Shown here piece after piece: positions 11,401-63,196 of a stretch of 64,000 nt of DNA (position 1 is its first letter; each line of letters begins with the position of its first letter). The DNA is from Malacoraja senta. Taxonomy: Eukaryota. The DNA lies in contig JAXLNO010000592.1 of NCBI GenBank assembly GCA_038087875.1, forward strand, positions 1 through 64,000, written 5' to 3'. Under the pieces are notes generated by a model, which saw nothing but the letters and a program-made list of their open reading frames with translations, did not search any database and had not been told where the DNA came from. The position numbers and the translations under genes are program-made.

Positions 11401-13182
11401 ACTTCCGATGTCCTTAATAGGTAGGATAAATGCTATAAAAATGATTTTCTTACCACAAATCCTTTACCTATTTCAATCAATACCTATATATCTCCCAAAA
11501 AAGTTTTTCAAAAAACTGGACTCAGACATTACAAATTTTATATGGGATTACAAATCCCACAGAATACAAAGAACACACCTTAACAAACGAAAAGAGTTGG
11601 GGGGTCTAGCGCTCCCTAACTTTATGTATTATAACTGGGCAGTAAATATTAAAAATATGATTCACCTGCTGGACAATTCTGCCCAGCAGGTGGACTGGAT
11701 TATAATGGAAAAAGGGGATTGCTCCCCGAATAATATAGGAGCGATTATTCTCTCTCCAATAAATTTGAATAATAAAAATTATAATAAAAATCCAATTATA
11801 TATAGCACTATTAGAACATGGAAGCAAATAAAACAGAATCTAAAATTAAGAAACCTATCTCTCTTAATACCAATAGTCAATAACCCATCGTTTAAACCTT
11901 CAATCATAGATAAAGCATTTATACAATGGGAAAGAATGGGAATTAAAACGCTCGAAGATCTGTATGAATTAGAAAAATTACTATCATTCCAACAACTACA
12001 ACTGAAATATAATTTGAAAAATAATCAATATTTTAAATATCTACAAATCTGTGACTATTTGAAAACACACACAAAAGATTATTATAATATGCCTTCCGAC
12101 TTACTAGATGAAGCAATGAAGACAAAGGCGGAATCAGTTAATTTAATATCATACTTATATAATATCATCTTAAATATAGAAATACCCACAACAGATGGAA
12201 TTAGAAGAGATTGGGAACAAGATCTAGGTATAAAAATTTCAAAAGAGAGTTGGGATAATCATTTATTACAGGTGCATAAATGCTCGATCAACGTACGACA
12301 TACGCTTATCCAATTTAAAACATTACATAGATTATATTATTCAAAAACCAAACTAAATAAAATCTTTCCTAACGTCTCACCAATCTGTGATAAATGTATA
12401 TGTCAAGAAGCTACCATAGCACATTCTTTTGTTTTTTGTACAAAAATCCAAAAATTCTGGTTTGAAATATTTGATATTTTTTCAAAATTAATCAAAATAA
12501 AACTGGTACCAAAACCAGAATGGATTATTTTTGGAATATCGGAAGGTATTCCTGAATTAAACGTGTATCAGAAGAATTTACTCAATTATGGGCTAATAAT
12601 GGGAAAAAAGCTTATACTTAAATTCTGGAAAAATGCGCCCACACCAACAATAAAAATGTGGACATCAAATATGTTGGAAACATTACATCTGGAAGAGATG
12701 AGATTCCTCCTAGTAGGCAAAGTAGATCAATTTCAAAAGACGTGGTCTACGTTTTTGGACCTATTACAAGCATGAGGTGCAATAGTAATTTAGAAAAACA
12801 AATAAATAAATAAAAGGTATCTGGACCTGGTAATGGGAGGTAAAATAAAAACAGACTTGGTTGGTAGTTCCTTCTCTATGAAGTATGGTATAAGAGTTAT
12901 AATAGAGCGATTGTTCCTTCTTTCTTTCTCTTTTTTTTTTCTAGGGTCTATTTTCTAACTTTACTTCCTTCTCTAACTTCTTTTCTAAGGGGCTTTCTTT
13001 TCCCAACACTCTTTTGCACTTCACAACCTTTGCGCACTTTCTTCACTTTTCTTACTTCTTTCTTTTTCTTTCTTAAAGTTTAAAAAAGTGAAGCGGTACA
13101 AAAAATGTATTAATATATACGTGTTGTACATTACTGTAATCTACCGTACTTCTAAAAAATAAAAAAAATAAAAAAAATAAAA
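8439..13182 (+). mobile_element. L1-clade LINE, 5'-truncated (no complete ORF1), with intact ORF2, 3' UTR and A-rich tail
   Basis: A-rich tail at about 13154-13183. 5-bp duplication ataga at 8434-8438 and 13183-13187. The interrupted Penelope frame rejoins across it. Confidence 0.9.
8984..12775 (+). CDS. L1 ORF2p (APE endonuclease, reverse transcriptase, CCHC domain), 1263 aa from first ATG
   Basis: SWNIRG, LQETH, GGDFN, SRIDYF, SDHSP (EN). PGPDGF, SLDAEKAFD, RQGCSLSPLLF, LYADD (RT). CDKC..H..C (C-terminal). No stops. Confidence 0.95.
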   Translation: MHDDNQKKIGGITLCSWNIRGINEPIKRGKILAQLKSYNTDIAFLQETHLKQQDQTRLRANWIGQTFHSSFTSKSRGTAIIIRKGIPFKSKNTILDKEGRYLIVAGEINNMPITLVNIYAPNFDNPQFFNKILNIIAESNYQNVIIGGDFNCVLDPYLDKSMQKQKGQTKSKTSELLHTYMENTNITDVWRIANPTGRDYSFYSMVHKTYSRIDYFLVDTKLISQSLNPKYHINAISDHSPLTFVLKLEGMSMNKPFWRFNSQILKDPQGSIYLKKQMDLFFELNDTPEISPTLLWESFKAFIRGVIISFQAYQNKKNKNEQRHLEDQIKQLDIDNAKDPTMDKHNKILLLKFQLNKLLSEKVITLFQITKQEHFEFGDKPHKLLARQLKKREKENAILKIKSDRGEVLTLPKDINKRFAQFYQNLYTSKTSIDNNKISEFLDNCNLPQLERREQEELGAQITSKEIEDTIKTLKNGKTPGPDGFSNEFYKSFYDIVTPRLQKMYTYAYKEQNLPETLAESTIILILKKDKNIEEPGSYRAIALLNTDQKIIAKTLANRLSKYVSRLIHEDQTGFIPKRHSFNNLRRLLNIMHSHKSYDQELAIISLDAEKAFDQVEWDYMIKVLQKFQLGENFIAWIKLLYNKPTARILTNNILSSKFELSRGNRQGCSLSPLLFALVIEPLAEKIRTHSNIHGYNTKYSNNKLSLYADDVLLYITKPQISIPNILNLIEDFGSFSGYRINWNKSEIMSIKPKDSTHLRKFPFKIAMEKFKYLGIEITRNYHDMFKANYNPLLKKLNNLIKFWKTLPMSLIGRINAIKMIFLPQILYLFQSIPIYLPKKFFKKLDSDITNFIWDYKSHRIQRTHLNKRKELGGLALPNFMYYNWAVNIKNMIHLLDNSAQQVDWIIMEKGDCSPNNIGAIILSPINLNNKNYNKNPIIYSTIRTWKQIKQNLKLRNLSLLIPIVNNPSFKPSIIDKAFIQWERMGIKTLEDLYELEKLLSFQQLQLKYNLKNNQYFKYLQICDYLKTHTKDYYNMPSDLLDEAMKTKAESVNLISYLYNIILNIEIPTTDGIRRDWEQDLGIKISKESWDNHLLQVHKCSINVRHTLIQFKTLHRLYYSKTKLNKIFPNVSPICDKCICQEATIAHSFVFCTKIQKFWFEIFDIFSKLIKIKLVPKPEWIIFGISEGIPELNVYQKNLLNYGLIMGKKLILKFWKNAPTPTIKMWTSNMLETLHLEEMRFLLVGKVDQFQKTWSTFLDLLQA

Positions 13183-13310
13183 ATAGATGAGGCTCTCACC
13201 AGGGTCTCCTCTATATCCCGCAGCTCTGCTCTCACTCCCCATCACCCTACTCGTAACAAGGACAGAGTCCCCCTTGTCCTCACCTTCCACCCTACCAGCC
13301 GTCGCATTTG
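13183..13310 (+). mobile_element. Penelope-like fragment, right part
   Basis: IDEALTRVSSISRSSALTPHHPTRNKDRVPLVLTFHPTSRRI continues the frame broken at 8438. Confidence 0.85.
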
Positions 13311-13792
13311 CTTTCACCTCCTTTCCCCATTTTGTACCAACATTTGATACAGTAACATTTAAACGACGTAGGAAGGAACTACAGATGCTGGTTTACACTG
13401 AAGATAGACACAAAAAACAGCGGGTTAGACAACATCTCTGGAGAAAAAGAATATGTGACATTTTGGTTTCAGACTCTTCTTCGGACTCAAGTCTGTTGCC
13501 ATCTGTAAAACATCTGTCATGTTTCAATGGTAGACTTCCAAAATATATTGGACATTTGGGCACAATTTCAGAAAGTGTGGTGCGTAGGTCCCGAAATGAA
13601 AGCGAGGAGCCAGGTATTTCGGGAGGCACCTTTATTTATGTCCTTCTAGATTGTAGGGAAGTCCACGAGAGAAAGATGGCACCCAAACCCTTGCCTTTAA
13701 ACCTCTGGTTAAGGGCCGCCTCTGGACTGAACCATTCCCGTGCCGAGGGGTTTGACAGTTAGGATGGTCCGACCCTTGGGAGCCGCCACAAA

Positions 13793-14092
13793 AGTTTAGA
13801 TTAGAGATACAGTGTAGAAACAGGCCCTTCAGCCCACTGAGTCCGTGCCGACCAGTGATTACCCGCACACTAATACTATCCCACACACTAGGGACAATTT
13901 ACTATTTTATCAAAGCCAATTAAGCTACAAACTTGTACATCTTTGGACAGTGGGATGAAACCAGAGCCCCCCGGAGAAAACCCACTCAGTCACGGGCCGA
14001 ACGTACAAAATCCGTACCAACAGGACCCGTATTCAGAATCGAACCTGGGTCTCTAGCGCTGTGAGGTAGCAACTGTACCGCTGTGCCGCCCC
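13793..14092 (-). mobile_element. HE1-type V-SINE, near full length
   Basis: tRNA-like head, V-domain-like body and (taaac)-type tail on minus. Confidence 0.85.
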
Positions 14093-14589
14093 TGAATGTA
14101 TCCAACTGTAAATCCTTGGTGTTGCACCTGTTACATAGTTCTCTTGAATGAGCTTTCCAATTACACAAAGTGGCGTTCTCTGTTACAGGATTCTCAGTAG
14201 GATTTGCATTAGAGTGCAAGGATTTCTGGCTGCCCATTGCTATGAATCCAGCTGTTTTCCTTGCTGGTTCTGGTTAGACAGATGTTTCCCATAAATAGTC
14301 TAATGATCCAAATGAATTGGAGAAGTGAGATTCACAACAATCCAGAAATCAGTTTAGCATTTTGATTAATATGTTCTTTTAAACAAGATTAGTCATGGAA
14401 TGTGCAACTTCTCATGTATGGTCTGTAAACTCTTCCTATATTGTGATCTAATTATGCTTCTAAACTGATAGCCAAACATCAACATCAACATTCCCTGTGT
14501 TCCCATTCTATTTTCACTTGGTTCTCAGAATAAAAATTTTAAACTTTGGAGATTACTCCACCTTATTTTCTCTTACATCTTCAAGCTTT

Positions 14590-17742: not shown

Positions 17743-17893
17743 NNNNNNNNNNNNNNNNNNNNNNNNNNNNNNNNNNNNNNNNNNNNNNNNNNNNNNNNNN
17801 NNNNNNNNNNNNNNNNNNNNNNNNNNNNNNNNNNNNNNNNNNNNNNNNNNNNNNNNNNNNNNNNNNNNNNNNNNNNNNNNNNNNNNNNNNNNN
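17743..17893. other. Assembly gap (151 N)
   Basis: Run of n. Confidence 1.
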
Positions 17894-34833: not shown

Positions 34834-36245
34834 TTAACAATGCGACCCAAACGCGTACGTACAGCACCTCCCCCCCCCATCGGAAAGAAGAGAAGGCGTA
34901 GCGGAGGCAGGCAAGAATGTTAAGGGAGGGGGAGATGCAGTCGGAGCGGGAGAGACAGGAGGGGGAGGACGTGCAGGAGGTGAAACCGCCCGGCCAAAAC
35001 CAGGAGGCAACGGAGAAGGAGACCGCAATAAGCGAGGGGACTGGGGCATGCATGGAGCAGCAGGGCGATCAGCAGCAGCAGGTAGGAACCGCAACGGAGG
35101 AGCATAAGGAGCCGCAGGAAGAAGCTTCGGCTCGTTCACAGCCAACAGGTGTTGACGGCTCCGTCGATAGGCAGTCCCCTCGTAATCCACCAGGTAGGAT
35201 CTTGGAGAGTCGTCCACACCAATCACAGTCGCGAGGCGGGAATAGCCGGTGGTGGTCCGCATCCGAACGACCTGCCAGGGTAGTAGAGGCAGTAGAGGGC
35301 GGCAGGACCTGTCGTGGGACCGTCGTTGAACTTCATGTTTCTGATCGATCCGTTGTTGGACAGTGGCAGGATTGAGCACTTTCGGTAGCAGGGACTGCTG
35401 GACGATTGGCATAGGTGGTCTTGTAACCCTTGACATCAGACGCTGGGCAGGGGAACCCATAGCCGGGTCCCGTGAGACGTTACGTAGGTTTAGTAAGCCC
35501 AGGTAGAAATCGCAGTTAGACAGGCGGGACTGCTCCATCAGGCCCTTAGCACTCCGCACGGCCCGTTCGGCCAGGCCGTTACTCTGAGGGTACTCAGGGC
35601 TACTGGTGTAGTGATGGAAGTTCCACCTCGCAGCGAAAGCTTTGAATTCGGCACTTGTGAATTGCCGTCCATTGTCGGTCTGCAAACGGACAGGGACACC
35701 GTGGGCGGCGAAATGCTCCCGCATTTTGGCGATGACCATCCCGGAGGTGACGGACGGAAGGAGGTCCACCTCGAACCAGTTGGAGTATGAGTCCACCAGG
35801 ATGAGAAACTGCTTCCCCTGCCATTCGAATATATCGGCAGCCAGCGATGTCCAGGGCATGGCCGGCGCCGGCTGCTGCAAAAGAGGCTGGCGCTGCTGGT
35901 GTGGGGTAAGGTTGTTGCAGGAGGCACAAGAGGACACACGGTTCCTGATGTATTTGGCCATGCTAGGCCAGTAGAATTGTCCCTGGGCATGAGAAACAGT
36001 GGCCTCGACCCCAGGATGACTGTTGTGGGCTGCGTTGTAGTATAGATCATACAGAGAGGCTGGGACCACGACCTTGTGGCCTTTGATGATAACCCCATCC
36101 TGGATCACCAGCTCATCGCGGACAAGGAAGAACGGTTGGGCACCCGATGGCAAATTGGTGCGTCTGTCGGGCCACCCATGCTTGATGATGGCTGCCAGCT
36201 GCTGCAAAGCAGGGTCAGCGGCGGTGTGCTCGACCAGGCACTGCA
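34834..36245 (-). CDS. Gypsy integrase region (HHCC, DDE, Pro-rich tail), open frame with no natural start
   Basis: HNSHPG..CASC, AADIF, QTDNG, SNGLAERAV. The apparent N-terminus above 36243 is an inverted duplication. Confidence 0.85.
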
Positions 36246-36289
36246 GCTGGCAGCCATCATCAAGCATGGGTGGCCCGACAGACGGCAAC

Positions 36290-36964: not shown

Positions 36965-39773
36965 GGCAAAAGGTACAAAACTCCGATAAAGCAACACTTT
37001 CAAAGAAATAAAAAAACGATAAGCAGGAGGCGCGCGTTTTAACTTGCTGACACCATGTAAAGATGTTAAGTCTGACTCACTTGTAGCTTTACTTAACGTT
37101 TAATGATAACACAGGTTAAACACTTTCCAGCACTGACTGCACCCAGTCTGTCATCATGCTTGAACCAGGGAGGAGCAAGAGGGACAGAGAGTTCTTATAC
37201 TTGATAACTAAGGCGTGGTTAGTAGTACTGAGGTAGCTATATTATTGGTTGCATGCATAAACCATCTACAGTTACCAAATAGTGAAAGGCCTGGATAGAG
37301 TGGATGTTGAGAGGATGTTTCCACTAGTGGGAGCATCTCAGCAGAGGGCAAAGCCTCACAATTAAAGTACACTCCTTTAGAAAGGAGATGAGGAGGAATT
37401 TCTTTATTCAGAGGGTGGTGAATCTGTGGAATTCTGCCACTGAAGGCTGTGGAGGCTGTCAATGGAAATTTTTTTAAGGCAGAGAAAGATAGATTCTTCA
37501 ATAGTACGGGTGTCAGGGGTTATGGGGAGAAGGCAAGAAAATGGGGTTTGGAGGATAGGATAGATCAGCCATGATAGATGGGACGAATGACCTAATTCTG
37601 TTCCTATCACTTATGATCTTATGAACTTATGATTGAGTAAATAGCTGTCTGTAGTATTAACAATGACAAAACAAGTATATAGCATGCTAACGTCTTGGTA
37701 AAACTCATTCAAAATTATTTTATTAAATGCTCATAATTCAGAAATGACACTGGTGGATATACAATGAAATTCTCGGTCTGTTGCACATAAAACACTTCCA
37801 CAGCTATTACACCACAGCTTTGATAATGAGTATTGTTCCCAGTGCTCTGTAGGGTTAAGAAAACACAGCCCCCATACGTTACCGTGTTCCATAAATATTC
37901 ACAGGACATGGTACTGGGATGTTGTCTATGTGGAGTTTGCATGTTCTCCCTGTGAGCACGTGGGATTTCTCCCGGTGCTTCGGTTTCCTCGCACATCTCA
38001 ATGATGTGCAGGTTTGTAGCTGAGTTGGCCTTTGTAAAATTGCCCTAGTGTATCGAAAGAGGATGTGAAAGAGGGATAACATAGAACTGGTGTGCAAGAT
38101 GGATGGTATCAACTCGATGAGCTGAAGGCTCTGCATCCATGCTCTATAACTCAACTAAACTAAGCAATATTATGTAAGCTGTGGTGTAGAGCATGGTTCG
38201 TATTGAAAACAAAGATCCTTGTTGACTGGCCCATCAAATACTTGAAGCACTGAGTGAAGCATTAAATGCAAAGGCAATTACTTCTCCACTACACCATCAG
38301 GTATGTGAACACGGAATGCAGGTTACAGTATGTGACAAAGAGAAGTGGCAAAATAACTAGGAAGAAACTGCAGATGCAGGTTTAAACCGAAGATAGGCTC
38401 AAAAAGCTGGAGTAACTCAGCGGGTCAAACAGCATTTCTGGAGTCTGAACAAGGGTCTCATCCCGAAATGTCACCTATGTCTTGTATCCAGAGATGCTGT
38501 CTGATCCGGTGAGTTTCTACAGCTTTTTGTGTCTATCTCTGGCCAGATAAGTATATGATGTTTGAGAGTTAGATTGACAATCTGATCTGCAGGAAATAGA
38601 GGGATATGGATCATGTTGCAGTTGAATGGGATCAGTTTAGCATCTCATCATGTTCACCACAGTCATTGTGGGCCAAAGGACCTCTTCCTGAGATGAACAT
38701 TTTTATGTTTTATATAAAATAAGATTAGTAATCAGCTGTAAGCCCCCTTGAAAAGACTGCATCATTCAATAACATTATGTCCAATCTGATTTCGATCAGT
38801 TTACCGCATTATTCCTGCTCTCTTTGATTCATTTCTGATCTAAAACTCTCTATATCTCAACCTGGAAAATATTCATTCACCTTGTCTTCACAGCTGGAAT
38901 AGAAAGTTCAGGCAAATCATACACCTCCTGGAAAATAAATCTTCTTCGTAACTATTTTAAAGAGGGACCCAACATGGAGGGGCTGCCAGAACAAAGAGGG
39001 ACCATTGGGAACTGTAATGATTACTTTGTAACTGCGTCGACACCCTATATATGGTGACTCTTTGTATGTCATGCAAAACAAAGAATTTCACTGTGACATG
39101 ACACATATGGAAATAAAGTATCAATCAATCAAATAGGCGACCTTTTATTCCAAAATGTGGCGCAATGTATGACTTTGGAATCACAGGGTAACTGCAGTGA
39201 AGACAGCACTTGAAAAATTAATGGCTGAATGTAAAGTCATCAGTCAGCATTGATACAATAAAGAGCATAGAACATAGAACAGTACAGCACAATAACAGGC
39301 CCTTTGACCCACAATGTTTGTGCCGAACATGATGCCAAGACCAATTGTTATCTGCTTGCACATAATCCATATCCATCCATTCCCTGCATATACAAGTGCC
39401 TATCTAAAAGTCTCTTAAATGCCACTATCATATCTGTTTCCACCACCACCCCCGGCAGCACATTCCAGTCACTCGCCACCCTTGGCGTAAAACACTTGTC
39501 CTGCACATCTTTTTTAAACTTTGCCACTCATTGTAAAGCTGTACCTGCTCTTATTTGATATTTCCTTCCTGGGTAAAAAGTCGGATGGTCTACCCTATCT
39601 CTACTCCTCCCAGTTTGATATATTACTGTCAGGTCTCCCCTCAATCCCCGACATTCCAGAGAAAACAATCCAACTGTCCAGTCTGTCCAACTTTTCCCTG
39701 TGGCTAATACCCCACTAATCCAAGCATCATTCCGGTAGACCTCCTCTGCATCCCAAAGGAAGCTGATTGTACT

Positions 39774-39946
39774 TCATGGTCCTCTCCTGGTCTCTGCTGT
39801 TGTCAGCTGGCACTGTTCATTGAAAGGTTTTATCTTTTTCCTCTTCTTCCAGCAACCAATTCCAAGGATGATCCCCAGGAGAATGAGAGGAACGATTACA
39901 GCTCCAGTCACGATCCTAATCTTTATATCTTCTTTCACTGCCCTCT
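39774..39946 (-). CDS. MHC-I-like exon 5, connecting peptide, TM and cytoplasmic tail
   Basis: caacag| phase-1 acceptor. IVTGAVIVPLILLGIILGIGC followed by WKKRKK stop-transfer, then TGA. Confidence 0.75.
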
Positions 39947-40935
39947 CTGTTGGCATATATAGTGCATTTTAAACATTTATTGATCAATAACAACTTTGTA
40001 ATGATTTTATTATCTAAATTATACTAGCACTGTTCATATCTAATTAAAAAGTAATAAAGTTTTAGATTTATGTATTTATATAGAGGATGGATGTGCTTAA
40101 AATGATCAATGAAAAATCATTAAGCTCATATTAGTATTATGGTATTGAGATTTTATCTGCAGCATTTAATTAAGAATTTAAAGAATCAAGTAAGTCAGAA
40201 ATAGATGACTATTTGCAGTGTAGAGGTCAACAAGGCCATTTTCTTATGTTGATGATTGTTATTATAGCAAATAAGTGAACCCATTTATAGTTGATAAAAC
40301 TTCAAAGGTTTTAAACTTTGCTGATATTTCAATGATAACTGAGAATTTAATTTTCTCTCTCTCGCTCTCGCTCTCTTGCAACAGGTGTAGCTACTTCAGA
40401 CTGATAATGGGGTTGGATGTGGCACCACTATTGGTCTTTTGTGTAACTAACTACTATCAGAAAATTAACTAGATGCCCAAGGAAGAAGATAAGAGACCTT
40501 GTCCAGGATCAGCCTATCTTGCTTCCATTGTTCCTACATTTGGATGAGTGAGTTAAGGGTGACATAAGAATAATTTTGACCATAAGATATTGGAGCAGAA
40601 TTATGCCTTTCAAGTCCATTGAGTCTACTCCACCATTCAGTCATGGCAGATCGATTTTTACTGCTAAATCCCATTCTCCTTCCTTCTCCCTGTAACCTTT
40701 GTGACCCGTACTCATCAAGAACCTATCAATCTCTGCTTGAAAAATATGCAATGACTTGACCCACACAGCTGTTTGTATCAATGAATTCCACAGATTCACC
40801 ACCCTGTGACTAAAGAGATTCCTCCTCATCTCCATATTGAAGGTAGGTATTTTTATTGTGAGGCTGTGCTAGACTCTCCCATTACTGAAAACTTCCTTTC
40901 CCATCAACTAACCAGGCATTTCATTATCTGGTAGG

Positions 40936-42728
40936 CAGGGCCGGATTTACATATAAGATGGACAAGCTTCAGTTTAGGGCCTGGAGATCTAGGAGGGGCT
41001 CGCAGAGCCGGATTTACCACTAGGCTTCATAGGCTGAAGCCTGGGGCCCTGAAATATAGGGGGCCTCCGGCCAAGGCAGGACACCAGCCGTTCAACTCTG
41101 GGCGGGGCGGCCCCCCTCTCTATCTCTATCTCCGTCTGTCACTCTCCGTGTCCGGGTCTCCACTCTCCGCTCGCTCCTCATCCGCCAGCACGGCCGGCCG
41201 CCTTGCACATGCACACTGCTACGGCCAGCACATCCTCCCCTGCACATGCGCACAACCACAGCCCGCACGTCATCGGCCGCCCTGCGCATGCGCACTGCCA
41301 CGGCAACTGGTCGGCGCTGGGCACTTTCTCCCTCGCTTTGAATTGTGGGAGATTTGGCCGCCATTGCTGCCTCGCCGCAACCGCTGAAAACTAACACAGA
41401 ATCACTCCCTGACCCTGGATCAGGAGTATCTCCCTGGAGTAACTCTCGCTTCTGGTTTCCTGATCCTCCATAAATATTCTAAAAGGAATTTAAACTGGAG
41501 GTGGTAGAGGGCTGAACAATAACAGCCTATTGCATTTTATCTGTTTATTTATTGTGTATATATATGGTCTATGGTATATAAACACACTGAACTTTTATCT
41601 CCTGTTCTGTATTATGTTCACATATTATGTTGTGCTGCAGCAAGCAAGAATTTCATTGTCCTATCTGGGACACATGACAATAAAACTCTCTTGACTCTTG
41701 ACTTGGACTTAAGCAAAAAAGGGTTCTTGGGGAAAAAAGAGGTACCTTAAATTTAGTTGCGTCTGGTTGGGTAACTATGGTAGGGTGAAGACTATTCCAT
41801 GCTTTAATTGTGCGGGGGAACTCCATGGAGCAGCCAGCAACTCAGGATAGAAGAAATTGGGTGACGTTTCGGGTAGAAACACTTCTTTAGACTCCCTCTG
41901 GTTTTAGTGTCTTTAGCTTAATTTGAAGATACAGCGTGGAAACAGGCCCTTCAGCCCTCCGAGTCCACGCCGACTATTGATCACCCGTACACTAGTTCTT
42001 TCCCACACATTAACGAAGTAAGTCAAGAGTCAAGAGTTTATTCTCTCACGTCCCAGTTAGAACAATGAAATCCTTACTTGCAGCAGCACAACAGAATATG
42101 TAAACATAGTACTCTGTAAACAATGTTATAAACGAGAAAACAAAACGGTGTATATTTATAGCTGTGGTGGAGACAATCGCTGCTGCTACCCGACCCCCGG
42201 AGATTCGGAGGCTACAACCGCGGGTCTGGCGGATGGCAACACCGGAAGCCCGTGGGTCCCCTGGTGGGACACCGCTTTTCGGGGCATCCGCAGCGGCGAC
42301 TTCTCCCGCCCGAGTTGCGGGGTTGAAGAGCACCTGGAGGGGGGCTTTACATCACCGCCCCGCGCGGCTTGGAATGGCCGCCGGACTTTGCGAGCGCGCG
42401 CCGGGGCTCTAACACCAAGACGCGGTGCGCGACCCTGCATTAACCGGCGTGGCTTTAATGGCCGCGGGATAATCACCATCGCCCGCCGGGGGCTTTGACT
42501 TTGACTCTGACATCGGGGGGGTGGGGGGGGGGGAGTGCAGTGGAGAGATACGTTTTTTTGCCTTCCATCACAGCGCTGTGATGGATGTATGTGTAAATTG
42601 TGTTGTGTCTCGGGTCTTCTTCGTTTTGTAATGTATGGCTGCAGAAACGACATTTCGTTTGGACCTCAACGGGGTCCAAATGACAAATTTGTCCAAAAGA
42701 CAAATAAAATTGTATTGTAATTGTATTG

Positions 42729-42760
<32 letters not shown>

Positions 42761-44456
42761 CATAGTATATATACCCACACGCACACACACACAATTTCCC
42801 TCCTGGGATTAATAAAGTTCTATCGTATAGTATCGTGTGTGTAGGAAGGAACTGCAGATGCTGGTTTAAACTGAAGATAGACACACAAAGCTGGAGTAAC
42901 TCAACAGGTCAGACAGAATCTCTGGACAAAAGGGAAATATTACGTTTAGGGTTGGTTCTGAAATAGGTTCCTGCACACCTTTGGAATGTGGAAGGAAACA
43001 AGAGCACCCGAAGAAAACCCATGCGATCAAAGTGAAAAGGAGCAAACTCCAAACAGACAACACCTATATTCAGGATCAATTCCAGGTCTCTGGCACTTTT
43101 AGGCAGCAACCTTATGGCCAATGTACAGCCCCATTGTCTTGAACTTAATTAAAACGCCAAGTGTAGCATTTCCTGCAGTTGCAATGGAAAGTGCCAGGAG
43201 AGGGGGTGGTTTGGGTGGGAAGGGACGAATTGACCAGGGAGTTACGGAGGGAGCGGTCTCTATGGAAAGCCAACAGGGGAGGAGATGGGAAGATGTGGCC
43301 AGTTGTGGGATCCCATTGGTAGACAAAAAAGCTGTAGAAAATCAGCGGGTGAGGCAGCACCTGTGGAGCGAAGGAATAGACGATGTTTCGGGTCGAGACC
43401 CTTCTTCAGATTGATGTCGGGGGGGGGGGGGAATGACATGAAAAATAAAGGAAGAGACGGAGACAGTAGGCTGTGGGAGAGCTGGGAATGGGAGGGGAAG
43501 GAGGGAGAAAGCAAGGACTACCTGAAATTAGAGAAGCCTATGTGCATAGCGCTGGGGTGTAAACTACCCAAGCAAATATGAGGTGCTGCCCCTCCAATAT
43601 GCGGTGGGCCTCACTCTGGCCATGGAGGAGGCCCAGGACAGAAAGGTCAGATTCGGAATGGGAGGGGGAGTTGAAGTGCTGAGCCACCGGGAGATCAGGT
43701 TGGTTATTGCGAACTGAGTGGAGGTGTTGTGCGAAGCAATCGCCAAGCCTGCACTTGGTCTCACCGAGGTTGATCATACGCTGAATAATCCAACCACATT
43801 TTTTTTTGGAAGTGGAAAGAAATAATAGAAATTGCATTCATTGCAACGTGTAAAAAGAGTTAAGATACAGTATTATAATTGTGCTGCATGTCATTGTGGT
43901 ATATATCATGTCCTGATTGGTGAATATGTTTAGTTTGTGGCTTTATTTGAAGCAGAAATAATATGTGAATGCTTCATTGAGCATAATTCTGACTGGTCGT
44001 CCGAGCACATTATCGCACGTGTCATGCAAGCCATCTTAAATAACCACCTAAACTGTCATTTGGCAACTTAAAAAGCTACCAAGGTTGCCCGGCTGACAAC
44101 AGAGAAAAAAAATTAAGTGAGAGCCCTGCAAGGTGTATAATATTTTTGACACTGTCATAGGCCTTTCTTACATATGCTGTCACAACGCACTGTAGTCTCT
44201 AAACAACACTTCAGTAATTTTCCTTGCCCTCCATTTCAGAATAATAGTGTTTTAAGCCAATAACTCGACACTAGCAGTGGCAATAAATAAATAAATAAAG
44301 CCCAGCTTTCCAGCCCCTTATCTCATTGGCCACGCTCGGCTGCAAATCGGTGTCAATCTGGTGGACCATCTTCCTCTGGTCGTGGGGGTGGGGGATTGGG
44401 GGGGGGCCTCACAAGTGGAACAGCTTAGGGCCTCTCTTCATCTAAATCCGGCCCTG
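40936..44456. mobile_element. Non-autonomous hAT element (3521 bp) in MHC intron 4, filled with nested repeats
   Basis: Perfect 14-bp TIR cagggccggattta. Perfect 8-bp TSD ctggtagg (40928-40935 and 44457-44464). Splits an antisense CR1 fragment. No transposase recognised. Confidence 0.9.
43150..43780 (-). mobile_element. Penelope-like element 3' part: GIY-YIG C-terminus, pLTR with hammerhead core, partial tandem copy
   Basis: ETKCRLGDCFAQHLHSV..PVAQHFNSPSHS..LSVLGL..EGQHLIF. Core at 43382-43409. Then DPTTGHIFPSPPLLAFHRDRSLRNSLV..CNCRKC. Confidence 0.85.
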
Positions 44457-44914
44457 CTGGTAGGTTTCAATGAGATTCCCACCTCATCCTTCTAAATCCC
44501 ATGAGCACAGGCACAGAGACTTCAAACACTCCTCATACGTTAAATCAATCATCCCCAGGACATACATCCTCTCGACCCTCTCCAAAGCCAGCACATCCTT
44601 TCTAATATGGAGCCCAAAACTGCTCACAATATTCCAAATGTGTCTTCACCAGTGCCCGATAAATCCTCAGCATTATATTATTGTTTTTATATTCTACGCC
44701 CCCCGAAATGAATGCTGGCATTGCATTTGCCTTACTTACCACTGACTCAATCTGCAAATGAACTATTTGGGAATCCTGCACTAGTACTCCCACTTTGTAG
44801 CTCAGGTTTCTCAATTCTCTCCCCATTTAGAAAATAGTCTATGTCTTTATTCTGACTGCCAAAATGTAAAACCAGACACTTGCTACACTGTTTTCCATTT
44901 GGCTCTGCTTTGCC

Positions 44915-45203: not shown

Positions 45204-45261
45204 ACCACATTCCATTGACTATCAATAATTATGAGCAATTAGATAACCACAAATTAATAAT

Positions 45262-45550
45262 GGGTGGCACAGTGGCGTAGCGGTAGAGCTGCTGCCTTAC
45301 TGCACCAGAGACCTGGGTTTGATCCTGACTACAGGTGCTGTCTGCAAGGACATTGTATGTTCTCCCTGTGACTGCGTGGGTTTCCTCCCACACTACAAAG
45401 ACATACAGGTTTGTAGGTTACTTGGCTTAGGTAAAATTGTAAATTGTCCGTACTGTGTAGGTTAGTGTAAATGTATGGGTTGATCACTATTCAGCGAGGA
45501 CTCAGTGAGCTGAGGGGCCTGTATCTGCAGCATATCTCTAAAGCCTAAAG
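45262..45550 (+). mobile_element. HE1-type V-SINE
   Basis: gggtggcacagtggcgtagcggtagagctg head, degenerate tail. Confidence 0.82.
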
Positions 45551-45650: not shown

Positions 45651-45923
45651 CCTGTGGAACATTGACTCCCTGCAGCAGAGTTGCATGTTCGATGTAACAG
45701 GAGAATTTTGCCACATCTTCTCTATTCAGTTGAATTGTATTCTTCAGCTGGTAAGTCCCATCCCAATTGGGCAACAGATCACTGGATTCAGACTCATGGA
45801 CCCCCTCACCATCTCTCAGCCACGTTACATCGATGGCCCGTGGCTAGAAGCCTGTGACAAGGCAGGAGAGTCTCAGTGATTGCGACCCATCACGTTTAAT
45901 CCCAATAAACACCTCAGGGGTTT
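45651..45923 (-). CDS. MHC-I-like exon 4, alpha3 Ig-C1 domain (premature stop)
   Basis: TPEVF..LSCLVTGF*PRAIDVTWLRDG..LLPNWDGTYQL..FSCYIEHATL. TAG at 45844-45846. 273 bp. Not in the supplied ORF track. Confidence 0.92.
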
Positions 45924-46735
45924 CTGCAAGTGTAAGAAGAGTCAGAATCAGTGAAGACATGAACAAAAGCCTTCAATTGTAAGATCACTGCAACTCACCA
46001 CTTTCCCAATCAGAGTTTTTTCTCTGGCTGAACTAAGTTTTCAGCCTAGACCCAAAATGCTGGAATAACTCAGCAGGTCAGGCAGCATTCTGGAGAGAAG
46101 GAATGCCCAGAGATGCTATCTGACCCACTGAGTTACACCAACATCTTCTATCTTCAGTGTAAACCATCATCTGCAGTTCTATCTTGCACAAAGTTTACAG
46201 CCTTTTCTCTTTTCATTTTGCATTTCTGGCAAAACAACAAAACATTTAGCTTTAATATCACTGACATGCTCCTTATCTTAGCTCCAGACTTTAACTGACA
46301 GCACAGATGAAAGGGGAATGCAGGCCCAATGGAGGAGTATAACTCACCATTGGGATTGATACTGTAGACATGATTGCTTCTACCTGTTCATGAATCTCTG
46401 CTGAATAATAACACTAAATATTCCAAGAGGGAATGGGAGGAAGAAGTTCTTCAAATAGAGAACTGTTGGAAATTGAATGTCACCATCCCAAGGAGTAATA
46501 GAGGCAAATAGAGAATCTGATTGGGTTTCTGATCAGTTCAGCAACAGACCCTTCAGGCCACAAGGTCGGTGCTAAACATAAGACCAAGATACATATTCCT
46601 CCATTTCCTGAATATCTATATGACTGTGGATAAAGGACACTGGTACAATATTTATCTTTCACTTGCACTTCCTACCCACTGGTTCCATCTAAGAGGCACG
46701 TTGCCAGACAATTTACTGATACCCACGTTGTAGAA

Positions 46736-47029
46736 CAGGGTGGCGAAGCGATCGAGCTACTGCCTTACAGCGCCAGAGACCTGGGTTTGTTACTAACTAC
46801 GGGTGCTTGTCTTTACAGAGTTTGTACGTTCTCCCTGTGACCTGCGTGGGTTTTATCCGAGATCTTCGGTTTCCCCTCACACTCGAAAGACGTACAAATT
46901 TGTAGGTTAATTGGATTGGTATAAATGCAAATTGTCCCTAGTGTGTGTAGGATAGTGTTAGTGTGCGGGCATGGCTGCTCGGTGCGGTCTCGGTGGGTTT
47001 CCGCGCTGTATCTCTAAACTAAACTAAAT
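46736..47029 (+). mobile_element. HE1-type V-SINE
   Basis: Family head, body and (taaac)n tail. Confidence 0.85.
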
Positions 47030-47127
47030 AATTACTCAAGTGACAGCCTGAAGTGCATGATATTTCCCACCTGATCTATCCAGAGGATATCCTCTGGCCC
47101 ATCAGTCAGAGTGCCTACGTCGTGTAC

Positions 47128-47402
47128 CTCTCCTCTGTAGTGCTTCTTGTCCACACTCCAGATATATCCGCAGCCACTTCACACAGTCCTTCTCCAGGAG
47201 ATCTTTAAAATACTTGTCATGAAGGTGTTGACGTTCCACCGATCTGCTAGCATCTGGAAATCTGGACGTAGTGCAATCCAGTGCATTCTGTCCTTGTCAA
47301 AAGCACAGGCATCCTCCCCATCATAACCCAGTCTGACAAACCCATCAGTGGAATTGTCACTGTCCACTTCACAGCCGCAGAAACCCTGCACAAAGCAAAC
47401 AG
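47128..47402 (-). CDS. MHC-I-like exon 3, alpha2 domain (frameshifted)
   Basis: VCFVQGFCGCE..GYDGED..RW, then in a shifted frame DKYFKDLLEKDCVKWLRIYLECGQEALQRR. 275 bp instead of 276. Confidence 0.9.
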
Positions 47403-48479
47403 CTGGGGCTGAGGTAGGGGTGGAGGATTTGTGTTGGGGAGAGTGGATGGAAGGGAGAGGCAATTTACAAATCAGTTCTCAGCATGGTACAAACAGGCAT
47501 AACAGAACACAACATGGAGCTGTACAGCACAGGAGCAGGTTTAGCTCAGAGATACAGCGCGGAAACAGGCCCTTCGGCCCACCGAGTCCGCACCGACCAG
47601 TGGTCCCCGCATATTAACACTATCCTACACAGACTACTTTTCTTTTCCAGCTTTCTCCACTCTACCCCATCACTCTAAATGGTCCTGGTCTCATATGTTT
47701 TCTGTCCATTTTTCCACAGCATGCTGCCTGACTCGTTGAGTTCCTCCTGTTTGTTTTAAATTCAGATTGGCAGCATCTGCAGTTTGCTGTGACTCCATCT
47801 TAGCACAATGGATGATCAATGTGGATTCAGTGAGCAGAAGGGCCGGTTTCCATGATGTGTGACTCAATGACCCATGGTCTATATACTGAGGGCATGGACT
47901 AACCTCAAGTGTTATGGGGGGGGAGCTTTACTGTTGCGGATGTAACACTAAAGGAGTTCTGCTGTGTCAGAAGGGTGGAACTCAGATTCTGCACTGTCGT
48001 ACATAAAGAACAGAGGAAGAAGTGCATTGTCAGATGGGCAATGCTACAGAGCCAACAGGTCAGTCTGAAGGTTAAGGCAATGCAGATGGGAAGTACATCA
48101 AGGCTGTTGCACTGTGTGGGATTGCTACACCCTCTGAGGATTGTTGCCAATATTGAGGGGATGCTGGATTAACACAATATTATTACTGAGGGAATACCTC
48201 ATAGTCACCATCAACCAGCTTAAATCAAGATCCCATCTCTAGATGATCAGGCTATAAATAAACTAATGGTTTCTCCCTCATTCCAGCCCAACAAAACAGA
48301 TGATCCAATCCTTCCACTTATTACTGGTGTTGAATATCAAATGCTTAACCCATAAAGAGACTATCACCAGCCAACTGTTATGACTGTGTGTTCAGCAGTT
48401 AGGACACATTAAATATAGACGATGGGCCGTGTCTCTATCAAAATGTGATGGAGTAAATGTCTGAAACAGCATCAATGGT

Positions 48480-49095
48480 GCTGAAGTGAAAAAGGTTGAG
48501 AGTTTCTGGTTCCCCTACTGCCTCAGGAGACTAAGGAAATGCGGCATCTCCAATGACTCTTACAAACTTCTACAAATGTGCCATAGAAAGCATACTGACA
48601 GGTTGCATCACAACTTAGTTTGGAAAGAGTTCTGCCCAAGACCGCTGGAAATTGCAGAGAGGTGGAGATGTAGCACAGTCGATCACACAAACATGATTCC
48701 CCACCAGTGAATCCATCTGTATTTCAACTGGTTCAGGAAAGCAGACAACATAATCAAAGATTTGTCCCGTTCTGGTCACTCCTTCTTCTTCCTGCAGAAG
48801 GTACGTAAGCATTAAAGCGTGCACCACCAGACTCAGTAACTGTTTCCTCCCCTATGTTATCAGGTTTCTGAACAGTCCTCCCTTATGCTAGGGTTCACCT
48901 CAACCCCATTGTAGACACTGGACTTTGTCTCTGGCACTGGTACATTACAATGCTGAGAACTACATTCTGCACTCTTTGCTCTACCTATTGTACGAGTTTG
49001 GTTTGATTGTATTTATGAATAGTTTTCTTTGATGTGATTGACTAACGCAAAAAAAGTGTATCAGAGAATCATGTGTCAACAATAAAACTAAAACA
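48480..49095 (+). mobile_element. Rex1/Babar-like LINE 3' fragment
   Basis: YCLRRLRKCGI..TLTNFYKCAIESILTGCIT across a frameshift, with an AATAAA tail. Confidence 0.75.
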
Positions 49096-49150
49096 AAATC
49101 CATCTGTGTCATCACTGGGTGTCTACCCCAGGTCCGCTCACGACACTTAC

Positions 49151-49411
49151 TCGAGATACCATGTTGCTGTTGGTAGACTATCTCAGCATTTCCTCTGACA
49201 ATCCCATGAAAACCTGCAACTGTGATGGCCATTGAATCCCAGTGATCCTGCGGGAAAGACTGGGCCATCCATCGCTGTCTGGCAACAGCCCGCTCTAGTG
49301 TGCTGTCAAAATATGCTATCTGGACGTCATCCAGCATTGCTACCATACTGTACTCAGGCAGCTCATTCAATCCATGGTTCAACAGGTAGTAAAATGCAAG
49401 ATGGTGTAAAT
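49151..49411 (-). CDS. MHC-I-like exon 2, alpha1 domain
   Basis: tgcag| acceptor. (D)LHHLAFYYLLNHGLNELPEYSMVAMLDDVQIAYFDS..QRWM..DHWD..HGIS. |gtaagt donor. 261 bp. Confidence 0.92.
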
Positions 49412-49601
49412 CTGCAATGCATAAACAAAAATAAGTATGATTGTATCATTCACTGAAAATAACTAAGTTATTAATGCTAAAACTGATAACAATACAATAA
49501 CTTTGAATAAGGGAGTCACAAGGACCTGCAGATGCAAGTGCTGGATGAACTCAGTGGGGCAGGCAGCATCAATGATTAGGTGACAATTTGGGTCAGGAGC
49601 C

Positions 49602-49905
49602 TTTAGTTTAGTTTTTAGCTTAGAGATACAGCATGGAAACAGGCCCTTCGTGCGAGTCCACACTGACCAGCAACCCCCACACAATAACACTATCCTACAC
49701 ACACTAGGGACAATTTACATTCTGGACCAAGCCAATTAACCTACAAACCTGTACGTCTTTGGAATGTGGGAAGAATCCGAACATCTCGGGAAAAACCCAC
49801 ACGGTAATGGGGAGAATGGACAAACTCCGTACAGACAGCATCCGTAATCAGGATCCAACCTGGGTCTATGGTGCTGTAATCGAGTAAGTCTACCGCTGCA
49901 CCACT
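49602..49905 (-). mobile_element. HE1-type V-SINE
   Basis: Family match on minus. Confidence 0.85.
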
Positions 49906-53333: not shown

Positions 53334-53385
53334 CAGAGGAGACAGTGGCCACACCGTAAGTGTTCAGTAAGGTAAAAAGAAGCAT
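53334..53385 (-). CDS. MHC-I-like exon 1, signal peptide MLLFTLLNTYGVATVSS
   Basis: ATG at 53385, 52 bp, g|gtaagc phase-1 donor, class I-like promoter motifs upstream. Confidence 0.75.
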
Positions 53386-53488
53386 GTTTAACAGCCGCCC
53401 ACAGCACTATTTAACCAGCAGAGTAAATGCAGCAACAGTAACATAATCTCTTGTACGTTTTTAACAGAACTCTGGTGTGAAGGTAATT

Positions 53489-53556
53489 ATTGGTCCATGT
53501 ATACACAAACCTGATAACCAGATCCAATGGGAATGAGACCACTTGTTCTCGTCACT
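53489..53556 (-). promoter_or_regulatory. Class I-type promoter: X2/site-alpha-like GTGACG, Y box ATTGG, CCAAT
   Basis: On minus: GTGACG (53555-53550), 21 nt, ATTGG (53528-53524), then CCAAT (53493-53489). TATA-like ttaaata and a GC box lie closer to the ATG. Confidence 0.6.
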
Positions 53557-55177
53557 AATTACCAGTGAATACAGTTTACGGATTGGGTTTTATGGTAGGG
53601 ATTATATTGGTGTTTTAAGGACAACAATTACAAAATCATATTTCACATAGCATCTTACAGCCGAATAGATGTTTCTCAAAGTATAATGATTTTACAATTC
53701 AGAATGCAGTCAATTCCACAAACTGCAGTGTTAGATAAACCAGATAGTCTACTTTACTGTGTAGGAAGGAACTGCAGATGCTTGTTTTACTGTAGGCAGA
53801 TGCAAAAAGCTGGAGTAACTCAGCGGGTCAGGCAGCATTTCTGGGGGAAAGGAATAGGTGACATTTCGGGAAGGGTCTCAACACAAATCGTCACCTTTTC
53901 CTTTTTCCCAGAAGTGCTGCCTGACCTGCTGAGTTACTCCATCTTTTTATAAGCATAGAAAATAGGTGCATGAGGAGGCCCTTCGGCCCTTCGAGCCAGC
54001 ACTGCCATTCATGGTGATCATGGCTGATCGTCCCCAATCAATGCCTGCCTTCTCCCCGTATCCCTTGATTCCACCAGCCTCTAGAGCTCTATCTAACATT
54101 TTTGTGTCTGTCTTTAGTCCACTTTACTGTTATTGCTTAAGTAATAAAAATTGGACAATGCATGTGTAATAATTTCCCAGCCCTTATTTGAGGTAATAGC
54201 ATGCGTCTTTTTTTTCAGCTGGGAGGAGAGACATGAGCTCAGTTTAAAGTTGTGTCTAGGTGTAAATGTGCAGCTCAGTCTCAACATCAGTGCAGAAATC
54301 TCTCATTGAGCCTTCTGTTAATACATGGCCCTTTACACCATGTCCCACTCACCTGAAAACTATGCTCTCCATTACTTTATATTTACACCCTGTGGAAAAG
54401 ATTCTGACTCTCTATCCCATCTATGCCTCTCATAGTTTTATATACTTTTATCAACCTCCAGCATTCTAGCGATTACAATCTAAGTCTGTCCAACCTCTCC
54501 TTCCAGCTAATATCTAATCTGTGCATCATTCTGGCAAACCACCTCTGCACAAATTCCATGCTTCCAAATTCATCCTGCATTGGGGCAACCAGAAATGCCG
54601 ATAATATTCTAAAAGTGGCCTATCTGAAGTTCTATTCTCCGACCAGTCTGACTGTCCCCCTGATTAAAAATTATCTATGTATGCTTCGTTCACACCTACT
54701 CCTGGCTAATAATGATCTATTCTACCTTTTCCTTGAACTACATCTCATTTGATGTCATTCTTTCATACCTTACACTTCCTTATCTCCATGTCTCCCTTTC
54801 CTCTTCAGCCTGAAGGGACTCAACCAGAAATGTCAGCCATTCCTTCTATCCAGAGATGCTGCCTGTCCCACTGAGTTACTCCAGCATTTTGTGTCTATCT
54901 TTGAAGTTCCATAAAGCAGCATATGACTTCCTGACTCTTATACTCAATGCTATGAATAGTGTCTTTACCACTCTGGCTTTCAATTGATTGAAGGCGGAAA
55001 GGAGCCAAAGAATTATATAGCAAAAAATCTCTGTGGTGGGACTGGAACAGAATGTTTTTTTTTAAAGCAAAAAAATCAAGGATATTGTTCAATAAAAAAG
55101 TAAAATATTTATTTTCCCGGTATGGCGGGACTAACATATGATGAAAGAATGGACTGACTGGGCTTATATTCACTGGA

Positions 55178-61357: not shown

Positions 61358-63196
61358 CAGTGGCGGACTGGGTCTAAAAATATTGGTTGCCAGGAGACAA
61401 AGGGGGCCCACCCACAACTACAATGCTATCATTTAATTTTCATAACGAATAAATAATATTTTCAAAAAATACATATGGAAAAAAGGGTACAATTTAAAAT
61501 TTTTGTGAAAAAAATGGTTCTTAGTAATTACAGTGTACATGTACTGTACATATTACTGGCAGTAGATACCGAATGTAAATACAGAATGTTATAATTTTTT
61601 TTTTTTTAAATTTTAAGTAATTGGTTGATATTTTAAAATAATTTACTGCACAATTTACACATTAACAGATAGTTGAAAAGCACAATAGAGCATTGCATGC
61701 AGTCCACTATATTAAGAGCAATCGTTTGTGTTCGCTAGATGATTGTGCGAATCTGCCAATAATTGCTTCTGCATCCAATTCATCTAACAATTCCTTTTCA
61801 ATGGTTAGCAACATGTATGATTCCAAATTCTCCTCAGACAGCGAATTTCTTAACCTTGTCTTTATGATCTTTAGCTTTGAAAATGTCCTCTCACATTGGA
61901 CTTGAGTAACTGATAGTGTGCAGATGACTTTATAAAGTTGATAAAGGTTATCATATGCCTTGTCATGAAGTCTGTTGGATGCCAGAATGTTTAGTACACT
62001 CGATGGGCAAGTGCTGCACATTTTACAATTGTTGCAACTGGAATCCATATTCTCACCATCATTAAGCAACTTTAATACATCAAAGTTTGAAGCAAAAGAA
62101 AACAATTCCAATATTACTTGATCTTTGCTGATTTGTGGAAACAGCTTAATAATACCTTCCAATGCTTCATCTTCAAGGCCCTTCTCTGCAATAGTTTTAA
62201 ACTTTGCTGGGTCCAAGCAGGACAAATCTTTATACAACTGTTTGTGTTGTACAAAGCGTGATTCTAGTGACTGGACAATGCGATCCATTATTGGGTTAAA
62301 CACATTTACTCAAAAATCAGCTAGAGAATCTGAGGAATTTCTTTTATCATCAATAAGCTCATCTGCCATTCTTTTCTTCTTCCTCTGCCTCTTAACTGGC
62401 AATGCTGTTTCCAACGCAATAATTTCCAATGTTTGATTTTCATCCATATTCATCTGTGAAATCCTGTCATTACATTTCTTTACAAATTCCAAAGCCTTGC
62501 TGTGAACGTTATTAAATGTTCTTGTCTGTTCCTTCAACTTTGTTGTAGCTGAATCTACCAAACTCCATGCAGTAAACATATCTAACCCACTTGTCTGTAG
62601 ATAACTTGATAACGGGGTTGTAGTTTCAAATATATACAAGTAAAGAAATGCTGTCAATATGGTTTCAAACTTTAGAAGACTTTGAAGTAAAACATTTGCT
62701 TCATGTTTTGTTTTTGCATCAAACTTTTCTGAATCTTGTATCATTGATAATCATGTCAATAGATTTACGAAAGTACTGGCAGCGGCATCATCAAAACTTC
62801 CAAATATAGTTGTTGCTGCATTGGATTTTCCTGACCATCTGGTCTCACCAATTAGCTTTAATCGTTTCATTTTTTTCTTATCCTAGATGTTTTCCAACAA
62901 CTTCTATCCATACAGCCATTCTCTTGTATGATGCTTTCACAAAAGTTGCTCTATTCTGGAGCAAATTGAAAAAAGAAACTGCAGGCTCACAACATTTGTT
63001 GTTTCAGTTATCACCAAATTCAAGACATGGGCATAGCACCATTTCACTTGCACTTTATGTGCAATGTGACGAATAAAACCGTATTGTATTGTATTGTATA
63101 TGAACATGTTGATCAGCCACATCAGCAATTTTACTTTGTAAACCATTATACTGGCCATAGTAGCTTGCAGCGCCATCTGTGCTATCAGATAAACAT
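61358..63196 (-). pseudogene. hAT (Tip100/ZMYM1-like) transposase pseudogene with one terminus
   Basis: Terminus cagtggcggactgg at 61358. DGAASYYGQYNGLQ..WCYAHVLNL, LLKFETILTAF, CTLSVTQVQCERTFSKLKIIKTRLRNSL. Multiple frameshifts. Confidence 0.85.

Follow-up and report, generated by a model that had tools for sequence, protein, structure and literature searches.

MR1, CD1 and chicken YF1*7.1 are monomorphic molecules related to class I of the major histocompatibility complex (MHC), with grooves that have been remodelled for non-peptide ligands. In sharks, two named non-classical class I lineages, UFA and UGA, are the closest described systems to the gene considered here, and structures of both have been solved (8GM8 for nurse shark UFA, released 2024-11-27, and 9CH4, 'shark nonclassical MHC class I, UGA', released 2026-03-18). 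According to a review that draws on a personal communication, UFA and UGA bind lipids of the CD1d type (PMC12562908; also PMC10751288). The review calls two shark lineages, UGA being one of them, CD1-like lipid binders (PMC12562908), and UFA is MHC-linked and has been described as CD1-like (PMC10751288). Full-text searches on 9CH4, 8GM8, UFA/UGA and nurse shark CD1 returned no primary paper and only secondary mentions (PMC10751288, PMC12562908), and the supplement of PMC10751288 labels its genes only 'MHC-Ib', with no mapping of accessions to lineages. Here we describe a class I-like gene on the minus strand of a 64,000-nucleotide stretch of the Malacoraja senta genome (GenBank assembly GCA_038087875.1, contig JAXLNO010000592.1, positions 1 to 64,000 of the forward strand; this whole stretch is called the window below). 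The gene is very probably a complete five-exon pseudogene, and probably a recent duplicate, of a conserved elasmobranch non-classical class I lineage that is sister to UGA.

A search with the alpha1 domain against 1.8 billion representative proteins identified one 94% identical protein, little skate XP_055486430.1, which is annotated as 'MHC class I-related gene protein-like, partial' and encoded on scaffold JAMYXN010000384.1 of assembly GCA_028641065.1 (locus L001). With this paralogue as the query, one 'MR1-like' model with 54-74% identity was found in each of 11 further shark and ray species, and the next matches were at about 35% or less. In a careful maximum-likelihood tree of 78 sequences, the window gene and XP_055486430.1 are sisters within a clade with 100/100 support, which divides into a ray half and a shark half in keeping with the species tree. 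The sister group of this clade (99/90) comprises the 9CH4-like proteins, itself supported at 100/100, and the pair joins (99/85) a separate 100/100 clade that holds nurse shark P0269. The clades were named from the titles of PDB entries, 9CH4 identifying UGA and 8GM8, which is 100% identical to P0269, identifying UFA. The clade of classical UAA sequences, anchored by P0219 through its match to the nurse shark structure 6LUP (E 2e-94), is distinct from the window lineage. The original prediction, made from the letters of the window, had proposed such a phylogeny as a check, with nesting within classical UAA as the outcome that would contradict it, and the gene was found outside UAA. The signature that sets the lineage apart as sister to UGA (F7, H59, C99, A123, L143, R146 and L159, together with an N-S-T sequon in alpha2) is present in the window gene.

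When translated on the minus strand, the span originally described, 45651-49411, yields the exons for the alpha1, alpha2 and alpha3 domains of a class I-like gene, with limits that match exactly. The full gene comprises five exons, runs from 53385 to 39727 on the minus strand and exceeds that span at both ends (Table 1). Acceptors and donors are canonical at every junction, and the gene has an MHC_I platform, a C1-set alpha3 domain, a transmembrane segment, one exon per domain and phase-1 junctions, as is characteristic of the class I superfamily. Its translated pieces match the Pfam families MHC_I and C1-set. The leader exon, located by a scan for open reading frames and donors, is 96% identical to L001 100-151 and 92% identical to positions 12581-12632 of a sawfish locus (L004), and it corresponds by homology to the exon annotated as the start of the orthologue in the sevengill shark Heptranchias (L003 10001-10052). 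The alpha1 exon matches MHC_I and chain 9CH4_A (phmmer, E 3e-21), and is 96.9% identical to the L001 exon. Both halves of the alpha2 exon match MHC_I, and this exon is 96% identical to that of the little skate paralogue. Its length is 276 nucleotides (nt) in L001, L003, L004 and a second little skate locus (L002), against one fewer in the window; an alternative in-frame acceptor lies 6 nt upstream and is the one used by NCBI in the little skate paralogue model. The alpha3 exon matches C1-set (E 7e-9) and has 9CH4 as its best PDB match. In the tail exon, the ancestral frame closes at TGA 39729..39727, and the present frame closes early, at TGA 39776..39774. A tblastn search of the 64-kb window with exon pieces of this gene returned no other class I gene.

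Three lesions disrupt this gene, and they were read against L001 and L002 of little skate, L003 of sevengill shark and L004 of sawfish. The alpha2 and alpha3 lesions are derived relative to all four loci, and the tail deletion is derived relative to L001 only. In alpha2, one A has been lost after the Met codon at 47220..47218, which is Met149 in the gene's own count; the affected codon lies between W147 and C164 in human leukocyte antigen (HLA) numbering. The tail deletion is followed slightly downstream by a second change, an in-frame deletion of 9 nt. An open reading frame through all exons is thus interrupted in the window gene by a frameshift, a TAG codon and a frameshift in the tail; over 271 codons, no stop interrupts the little skate paralogue, the sawfish gene or the sevengill shark gene once each is spliced at its canonical sites. 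The alpha2 frameshift would lead to a stop within exon 3, and the product would be a fragment of alpha1 and two-thirds of alpha2 with neither alpha3 nor a membrane anchor. By the established rule, a premature stop that precedes the last exon junction triggers nonsense-mediated decay; the stop in exon 3 is so placed, and the window transcript would probably be removed in this way. Because of the three disabling lesions, the window copy cannot present any ligand.

Table 1. Exons and disabling lesions of the class I-like gene in the window (a slash marks an exon-intron boundary; L001 and L002 are the little skate loci, L003 the sevengill shark locus and L004 the sawfish locus)
Feature	Position	Strand	Details
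Leader (signal peptide) exon	53334..53385	-	ATG at 53385; 17 codons MLLFTLLNTYGVATVSS + 1 nt; donor G/GTAAGC
Alpha1 exon	49151..49411	-	261 nt, phase 1 at both ends; acceptor TTGCAG/AT, donor TCGA/GTAAGT
Alpha2 exon	47128..47402	-	275 nt; acceptor CCCCAG/CT, donor AGAG/GTACAC
Alpha3 (immunoglobulin C1-set) exon	45651..45923	-	273 nt; acceptor CTTGCAG/AA, donor CAGG/GTAAGT
Connecting peptide, transmembrane and cytoplasmic tail exon	39727..39946	-	Acceptor CCAACAG/AG; from tblastn of XP_055486430.1 and alignment to L001
Lesion 1, 1-nt deletion in alpha2	47216..47218	-	ATG-ACAAG against ATGAACAAG in the other loci aligned (ATAAACAAG in L002), n = 4
Premature TGA in the shifted frame	47179..47181	-	12 codons past the deletion (...TSILKISWRRTV*); within exon 3 and long before the last exon junction
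Lesion 2, TAG for TAC	45844..45846	-	Tyr of the conserved GFYP motif in alpha3; TAC in L001, L002, L003 and L004
Lesion 3, 1-nt deletion in the tail	39810..39811	-	CAGTG-CCAGC against CAGGGACCAGC in L001

The comparison with little skate showed how closely the window copy still resembles an intact-looking gene. XP_055486430.1 shares 91% protein identity with it over alpha1-alpha3, has the same five exons and splice sites and is identical at 38/38 groove positions. Collinearity of L001 with the window extends from about 53.5 kb to 30.9 kb, at a nucleotide identity of 87-91% for introns and flanking DNA and of 94.5-96.9% for the alpha exons. However, the little skate gene is open through all exons, whereas the window copy carries the breaks described above along with private changes that include F>C at 93. 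A third copy (L002) lies at 11723-14218 of little skate scaffold JAMYXN010000412.1, where the annotation gives a protein of 263 residues (P0176). This copy, too, is decayed, with a TGA at the Cys164 codon, an alpha2 donor changed from GT to GC and a 3-nt deletion in alpha3; no alpha1 exon was found upstream in L002. The window, L001 and L002 copies are roughly equidistant in pairwise comparisons, and for this reason the window copy is taken to be a paralogue of the little skate copies. As regards the NCBI model XP_055486430.1 itself, residues 180-191 (GTRPRHSDWWNG; L001 12984-13019 region) are a read-through of the canonical alpha2 donor. These 12 residues fall in a gap against 9CH4 and have a predicted local distance difference test (pLDDT) score below 50, the sole poorly predicted stretch of the protein. 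The model is labelled 'partial', yet a good leader exon is present about 10 kb upstream, at L001 100-151.

The pattern of substitutions was also informative. Between the window gene and L001, synonymous divergence (dS) is 0.066 and the ratio of non-synonymous to synonymous divergence (dN/dS) is 0.57, compared with dN/dS of 0.22 for skate versus sawfish and 0.18 for sawfish versus sevengill shark. On the window branch, 11 non-synonymous changes stand against 5 synonymous ones, a balance that neutral evolution can explain (P 0.25) and that would seldom arise at 0.22, the ratio of the lineage as a whole (P 0.04). Amongst the private or derived changes on this branch are F2L, P44A in the near-invariant VPRQ motif and the F>C change at 93.

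A functional gene, in which the breaks are either assembly errors or one null allele of a working locus, would account for the intact state of all five exons and all splice sites, for the identity of all 38 groove positions examined to those of the intact-looking paralogue and for exons that are better conserved than introns. We nevertheless consider it improbable. The three lesions are independent and of two kinds, namely two 1-nt deletions outside long homopolymers and one C>G substitution. The relaxed substitutions on the window branch, with F2L, P44A in VPRQ and F>C at 93 amongst them, also argue against function, and the second decayed copy, L002 of little skate, indicates that decay of duplicates is normal in this family.

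UGA is the nearest characterised relative of the gene: 9CH4 is the best PDB sequence match to XP_055486430.1 (E 3e-60), and AlphaFold2 predicted a confident class I fold for the paralogue ectodomain (pLDDT 90.8), the best structural match of which is again 9CH4 (Z 27.2; root-mean-square deviation 2.5 Å over 267 residues), with class I chains at Z 25-27. The lineage and UGA are sister clades that have motifs such as NxYFKxLLEKDCV in common, and both combine a hydrophobic groove with the loss of several peptide anchors. They are also tandem neighbours, with a spacing of about 42 kb and a shared strand in both little skate and sawfish. This adjacency was shown for the paralogue and for sawfish, and the expected position of UGA lies beyond the edge of the window. 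In several sharks, lineage models, UGA and multicopy class I genes occur on the same large contigs.

The best match to 9CH4 in both sequence and structure, the hydrophobic groove and the proximity to UGA could also be expected if the window gene were UGA proper or a true CD1 orthologue, an explanation that we find very improbable. UGA has Y7, Y59 and F99, whereas the lineage has F7, H59 and an invariant C99; identity to UGA is just 37-41%, and the groove of the lineage is more hydrophobic and more conserved. Additionally, the lineage and UGA form two 100/100 clades, and because each contains both sharks and rays, the split between them predates the shark-ray divergence. Concerning CD1, the sole CD1 sequence in the tree is placed apart from the lineage, at the end of a long, unreliable branch, and no CD1 chain is present in the 50 best structural matches to the paralogue model. 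A further point against this explanation is that the tails of lineage members have no Tyr-x-x-hydrophobic sorting motif. The earlier description of the gene as possibly CD1-like is thus only partly borne out: its nearest characterised relative, UGA, is a CD1-like lipid binder according to the review (PMC12562908), but the gene does not group with the one CD1 sequence in the tree, and CD1 is absent from the 50 best structural matches.

The likeness to other members of the superfamily is more distant. UFA belongs to the same wider clade (99/85) and is likewise non-classical with a hydrophobic groove; it differs in its identity of about 30%, in its shorter proteins (305-321 residues in full-length models) and in a groove that varies by species, with 36% pairwise identity against 83% in the lineage. 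After UGA, the structural matches to the paralogue model are chicken class I, including the lipid-binding YF1*7.1, shark UAA and MR1. In sequence, MR1 chains rank next behind UGA, and this accounts for the automatic 'MR1-like' name given by NCBI, although at 30-32% identity they reflect general class I similarity. Sequence, tree and the top 50 structural matches gave no evidence of orthology to mammalian MR1, CD1 or chicken YF1*7.1. The suggestion of a new lineage did not hold in the sense of one not seen before, as NCBI already models one 'MR1-like' gene in each of 12 elasmobranchs, under what is a misleading automatic name. The lineage belongs to the known UFA/UGA group, of which UFA and UGA are named and solved in structure, and the window gene is an ordinary young pseudogene of a recognised family; in the literature searched, no published name or description was found for the lineage that is sister to UGA.

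Residues were compared in HLA numbering, anchored on conserved motifs and on a phmmer alignment to carp class I, and the window protein was read across two breaks, the 1-nt deletion in alpha2 and the TAG at 45846..45844. The anchor-region residues are F7, Y9, M24, H59, Q84, A123, L143, R146, W147, L159, W167 and Y171, and those of the groove floor further include G97, C99, V114 and L116. All of the replaced (F7, H59, A123, L143 in place of T143, and L159) and retained (W147, W167 and Y171) residues listed in the original prediction were confirmed, as were its floor positions F7, Y9, M24, G97, C99, V114 and L116 and its hydrophobic alpha1 helix, with M, V, F, I, V, I and V at positions 63, 67, 70, 73, 74, 80 and 81, respectively. 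The N86 sequon is absent, as claimed, since alpha1 ends in YQQQHGIS with no N-x-S/T; a conserved N-S-T sequon is placed in the alpha2 loop instead. At the eight positions that anchor peptide termini, classical molecules have Y7, Y59, Y/R84, T143, K146, W147, Y159 and Y171, and the window gene has F7, H59, Q84, L143, R146, W147, L159 and Y171. Three of the eight are therefore kept, in agreement with a non-classical molecule. A degenerate derivative of a classical peptide-presenting lineage of UAA or UBA type is almost certainly not the answer, since the one point in its favour, an alpha2 end (CVKWLRIYLECGQEALQR) whose top-scoring PDB matches are classical class I chains, is set against a position outside both the UAA clade and the large multicopy shark clade and against the replacement of 5/8 anchors, identically in sharks and rays.

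Two further identities were considered and rejected. The alpha2 pieces do not rank 9CH4 first, which raised the idea of a mosaic with a classical alpha2; the whole-protein match, the shared alpha2 motifs and the tree put all three domains in the lineage sister to UGA, and the 96% identity of alpha2 to the paralogue also spoke against it. Identity with UDA or UEA was excluded from the tree, in which no sequence carries a UDA or UEA label, and from what is reported of these lineages: UDA reportedly keeps 8/9 anchors, and UEA is said to be a multicopy shark family.

The cysteines called extra in the original prediction, at 93, 99, 124 and 174 beyond the canonical 101-164 pair, are all present, but the description of a cysteine-rich groove was overstated, as only Cys99 is a groove-floor cysteine throughout the lineage. 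Cys99 is invariant, while Cys93 is private to the window copy, every relative having F at this position. Cys124 is limited to skates and rays, and Cys174 occurs in most members of the lineage and is lacking in some. From the alternation of side chains along a beta-strand, the side chain of residue 124 is expected to face outwards from the groove, and residues 99, 124 and 174 should not be neighbours.

Groove chemistry was summarised as the mean Kyte-Doolittle hydropathy over 33 inward-facing positions. This value is 1.33 (standard deviation 0.09) in the lineage, 0.82 in UGA, 0.81 in UFA and -0.35 in sequences with classical anchors. Within the lineage, pairwise identity is 83% in the groove, 77% on the helix-top face, 71% in the rest of alpha1-alpha2 and 64% in alpha3. 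Amongst the groups compared, the groove of the lineage is thus both the most hydrophobic and the most conserved, and this pattern of conservation suggests one conserved ligand and a conserved receptor. Presentation of hydrophobic ligands, as was predicted for the gene or its intact paralogues, is consistent with the groove of the lineage but not with this gene, which with three lesions cannot present. On the top face of the alpha1 helix, the lineage has the invariant small residues Ala68, Gly69, Gly72 and Gly76, which are unusual for class I and may shape receptor docking.

Intact members of the lineage would adopt a class I fold as type I membrane glycoproteins, and their groove, devoid of the clamps that hold peptide ends, would be lined almost wholly by conserved hydrophobic side chains. 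By analogy with UGA and UFA, they are most likely beta2-microglobulin-associated, monomorphic molecules that present a single conserved ligand, hydrophobic and lipid-like, to an invariant receptor. A more ambitious proposal is that the lineage constitutes a third, unnamed CD1-like branch of sharks and rays besides UFA and UGA, with its own single conserved non-peptide ligand, a floor with an invariant, unpaired Cys99 that might even bind this ligand covalently, as Lys43 does in MR1, an equally conserved helix-top face for an invariant receptor and, in skates, a duplication that has left decayed copies; taken as a whole, we regard this as unlikely.

Several points weigh against reading the window gene as the dead duplicate of a working, lipid-presenting lineage. 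The branch of the supposedly intact paralogue also looks relaxed, with 10 non-synonymous and 5 synonymous changes, so that this paralogue may not be the working skate copy. The breaks may represent a null allele at a locus that works in other individuals, although three independent assembly errors are unlikely. The ligand class was deduced from residue chemistry together with the second-hand statement of the review on UFA and UGA. Lastly, below UGA the list of structural neighbours is made up of ordinary class I molecules, and lipid binding is thus not shown by the backbone alone.

Other features of the window were noted in the course of the analysis. Upstream of the leader exon (53386-53600, minus strand), the nearest 150 bp or so contain CCAAT boxes and inverted ATTGG boxes, which may be promoter Y-boxes. 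Intron 4 (40262-44457, minus strand) is about 3 kb longer than that of the paralogue (L001 20532-21641), presumably owing to a transposon insertion. A dispersed repeat resembling transfer RNA, of the short interspersed nuclear element type, occurs in introns and flanks at about 45240-45480, 46740-47030 and 49560-49900, with many further matches in the window and in L001. A long interspersed nuclear element ORF2 at 8975-12772 (plus strand) has 1266 uninterrupted codons with endonuclease and reverse-transcriptase domains and may be young and active. A retroelement integrase reading frame with zinc-binding and core domains at 34837-36288 (minus strand) and a hAT transposase dimerisation domain at 61710-62303 (minus strand) place the gene in transposon-rich DNA. 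A run of 151 N at 17743-17893 marks an assembly gap or a masked stretch.

For skates, these observations indicate a lineage that has been duplicated to at least three diverged copies, at least two of which are dead, a point that is relevant to counts of functional MHC-Ib genes in skate assemblies. The window gene is one more decayed duplicate, and its value is as a pointer to a third, highly conserved branch of the UGA/UFA group. This branch is single-copy in most of the species sampled, and of the three it has the most hydrophobic and most invariant groove. If its intact members do bind a defined lipid or small hydrophobic ligand, this would strengthen the argument that presentation of non-peptide antigens dates back to the origin of jawed vertebrates.

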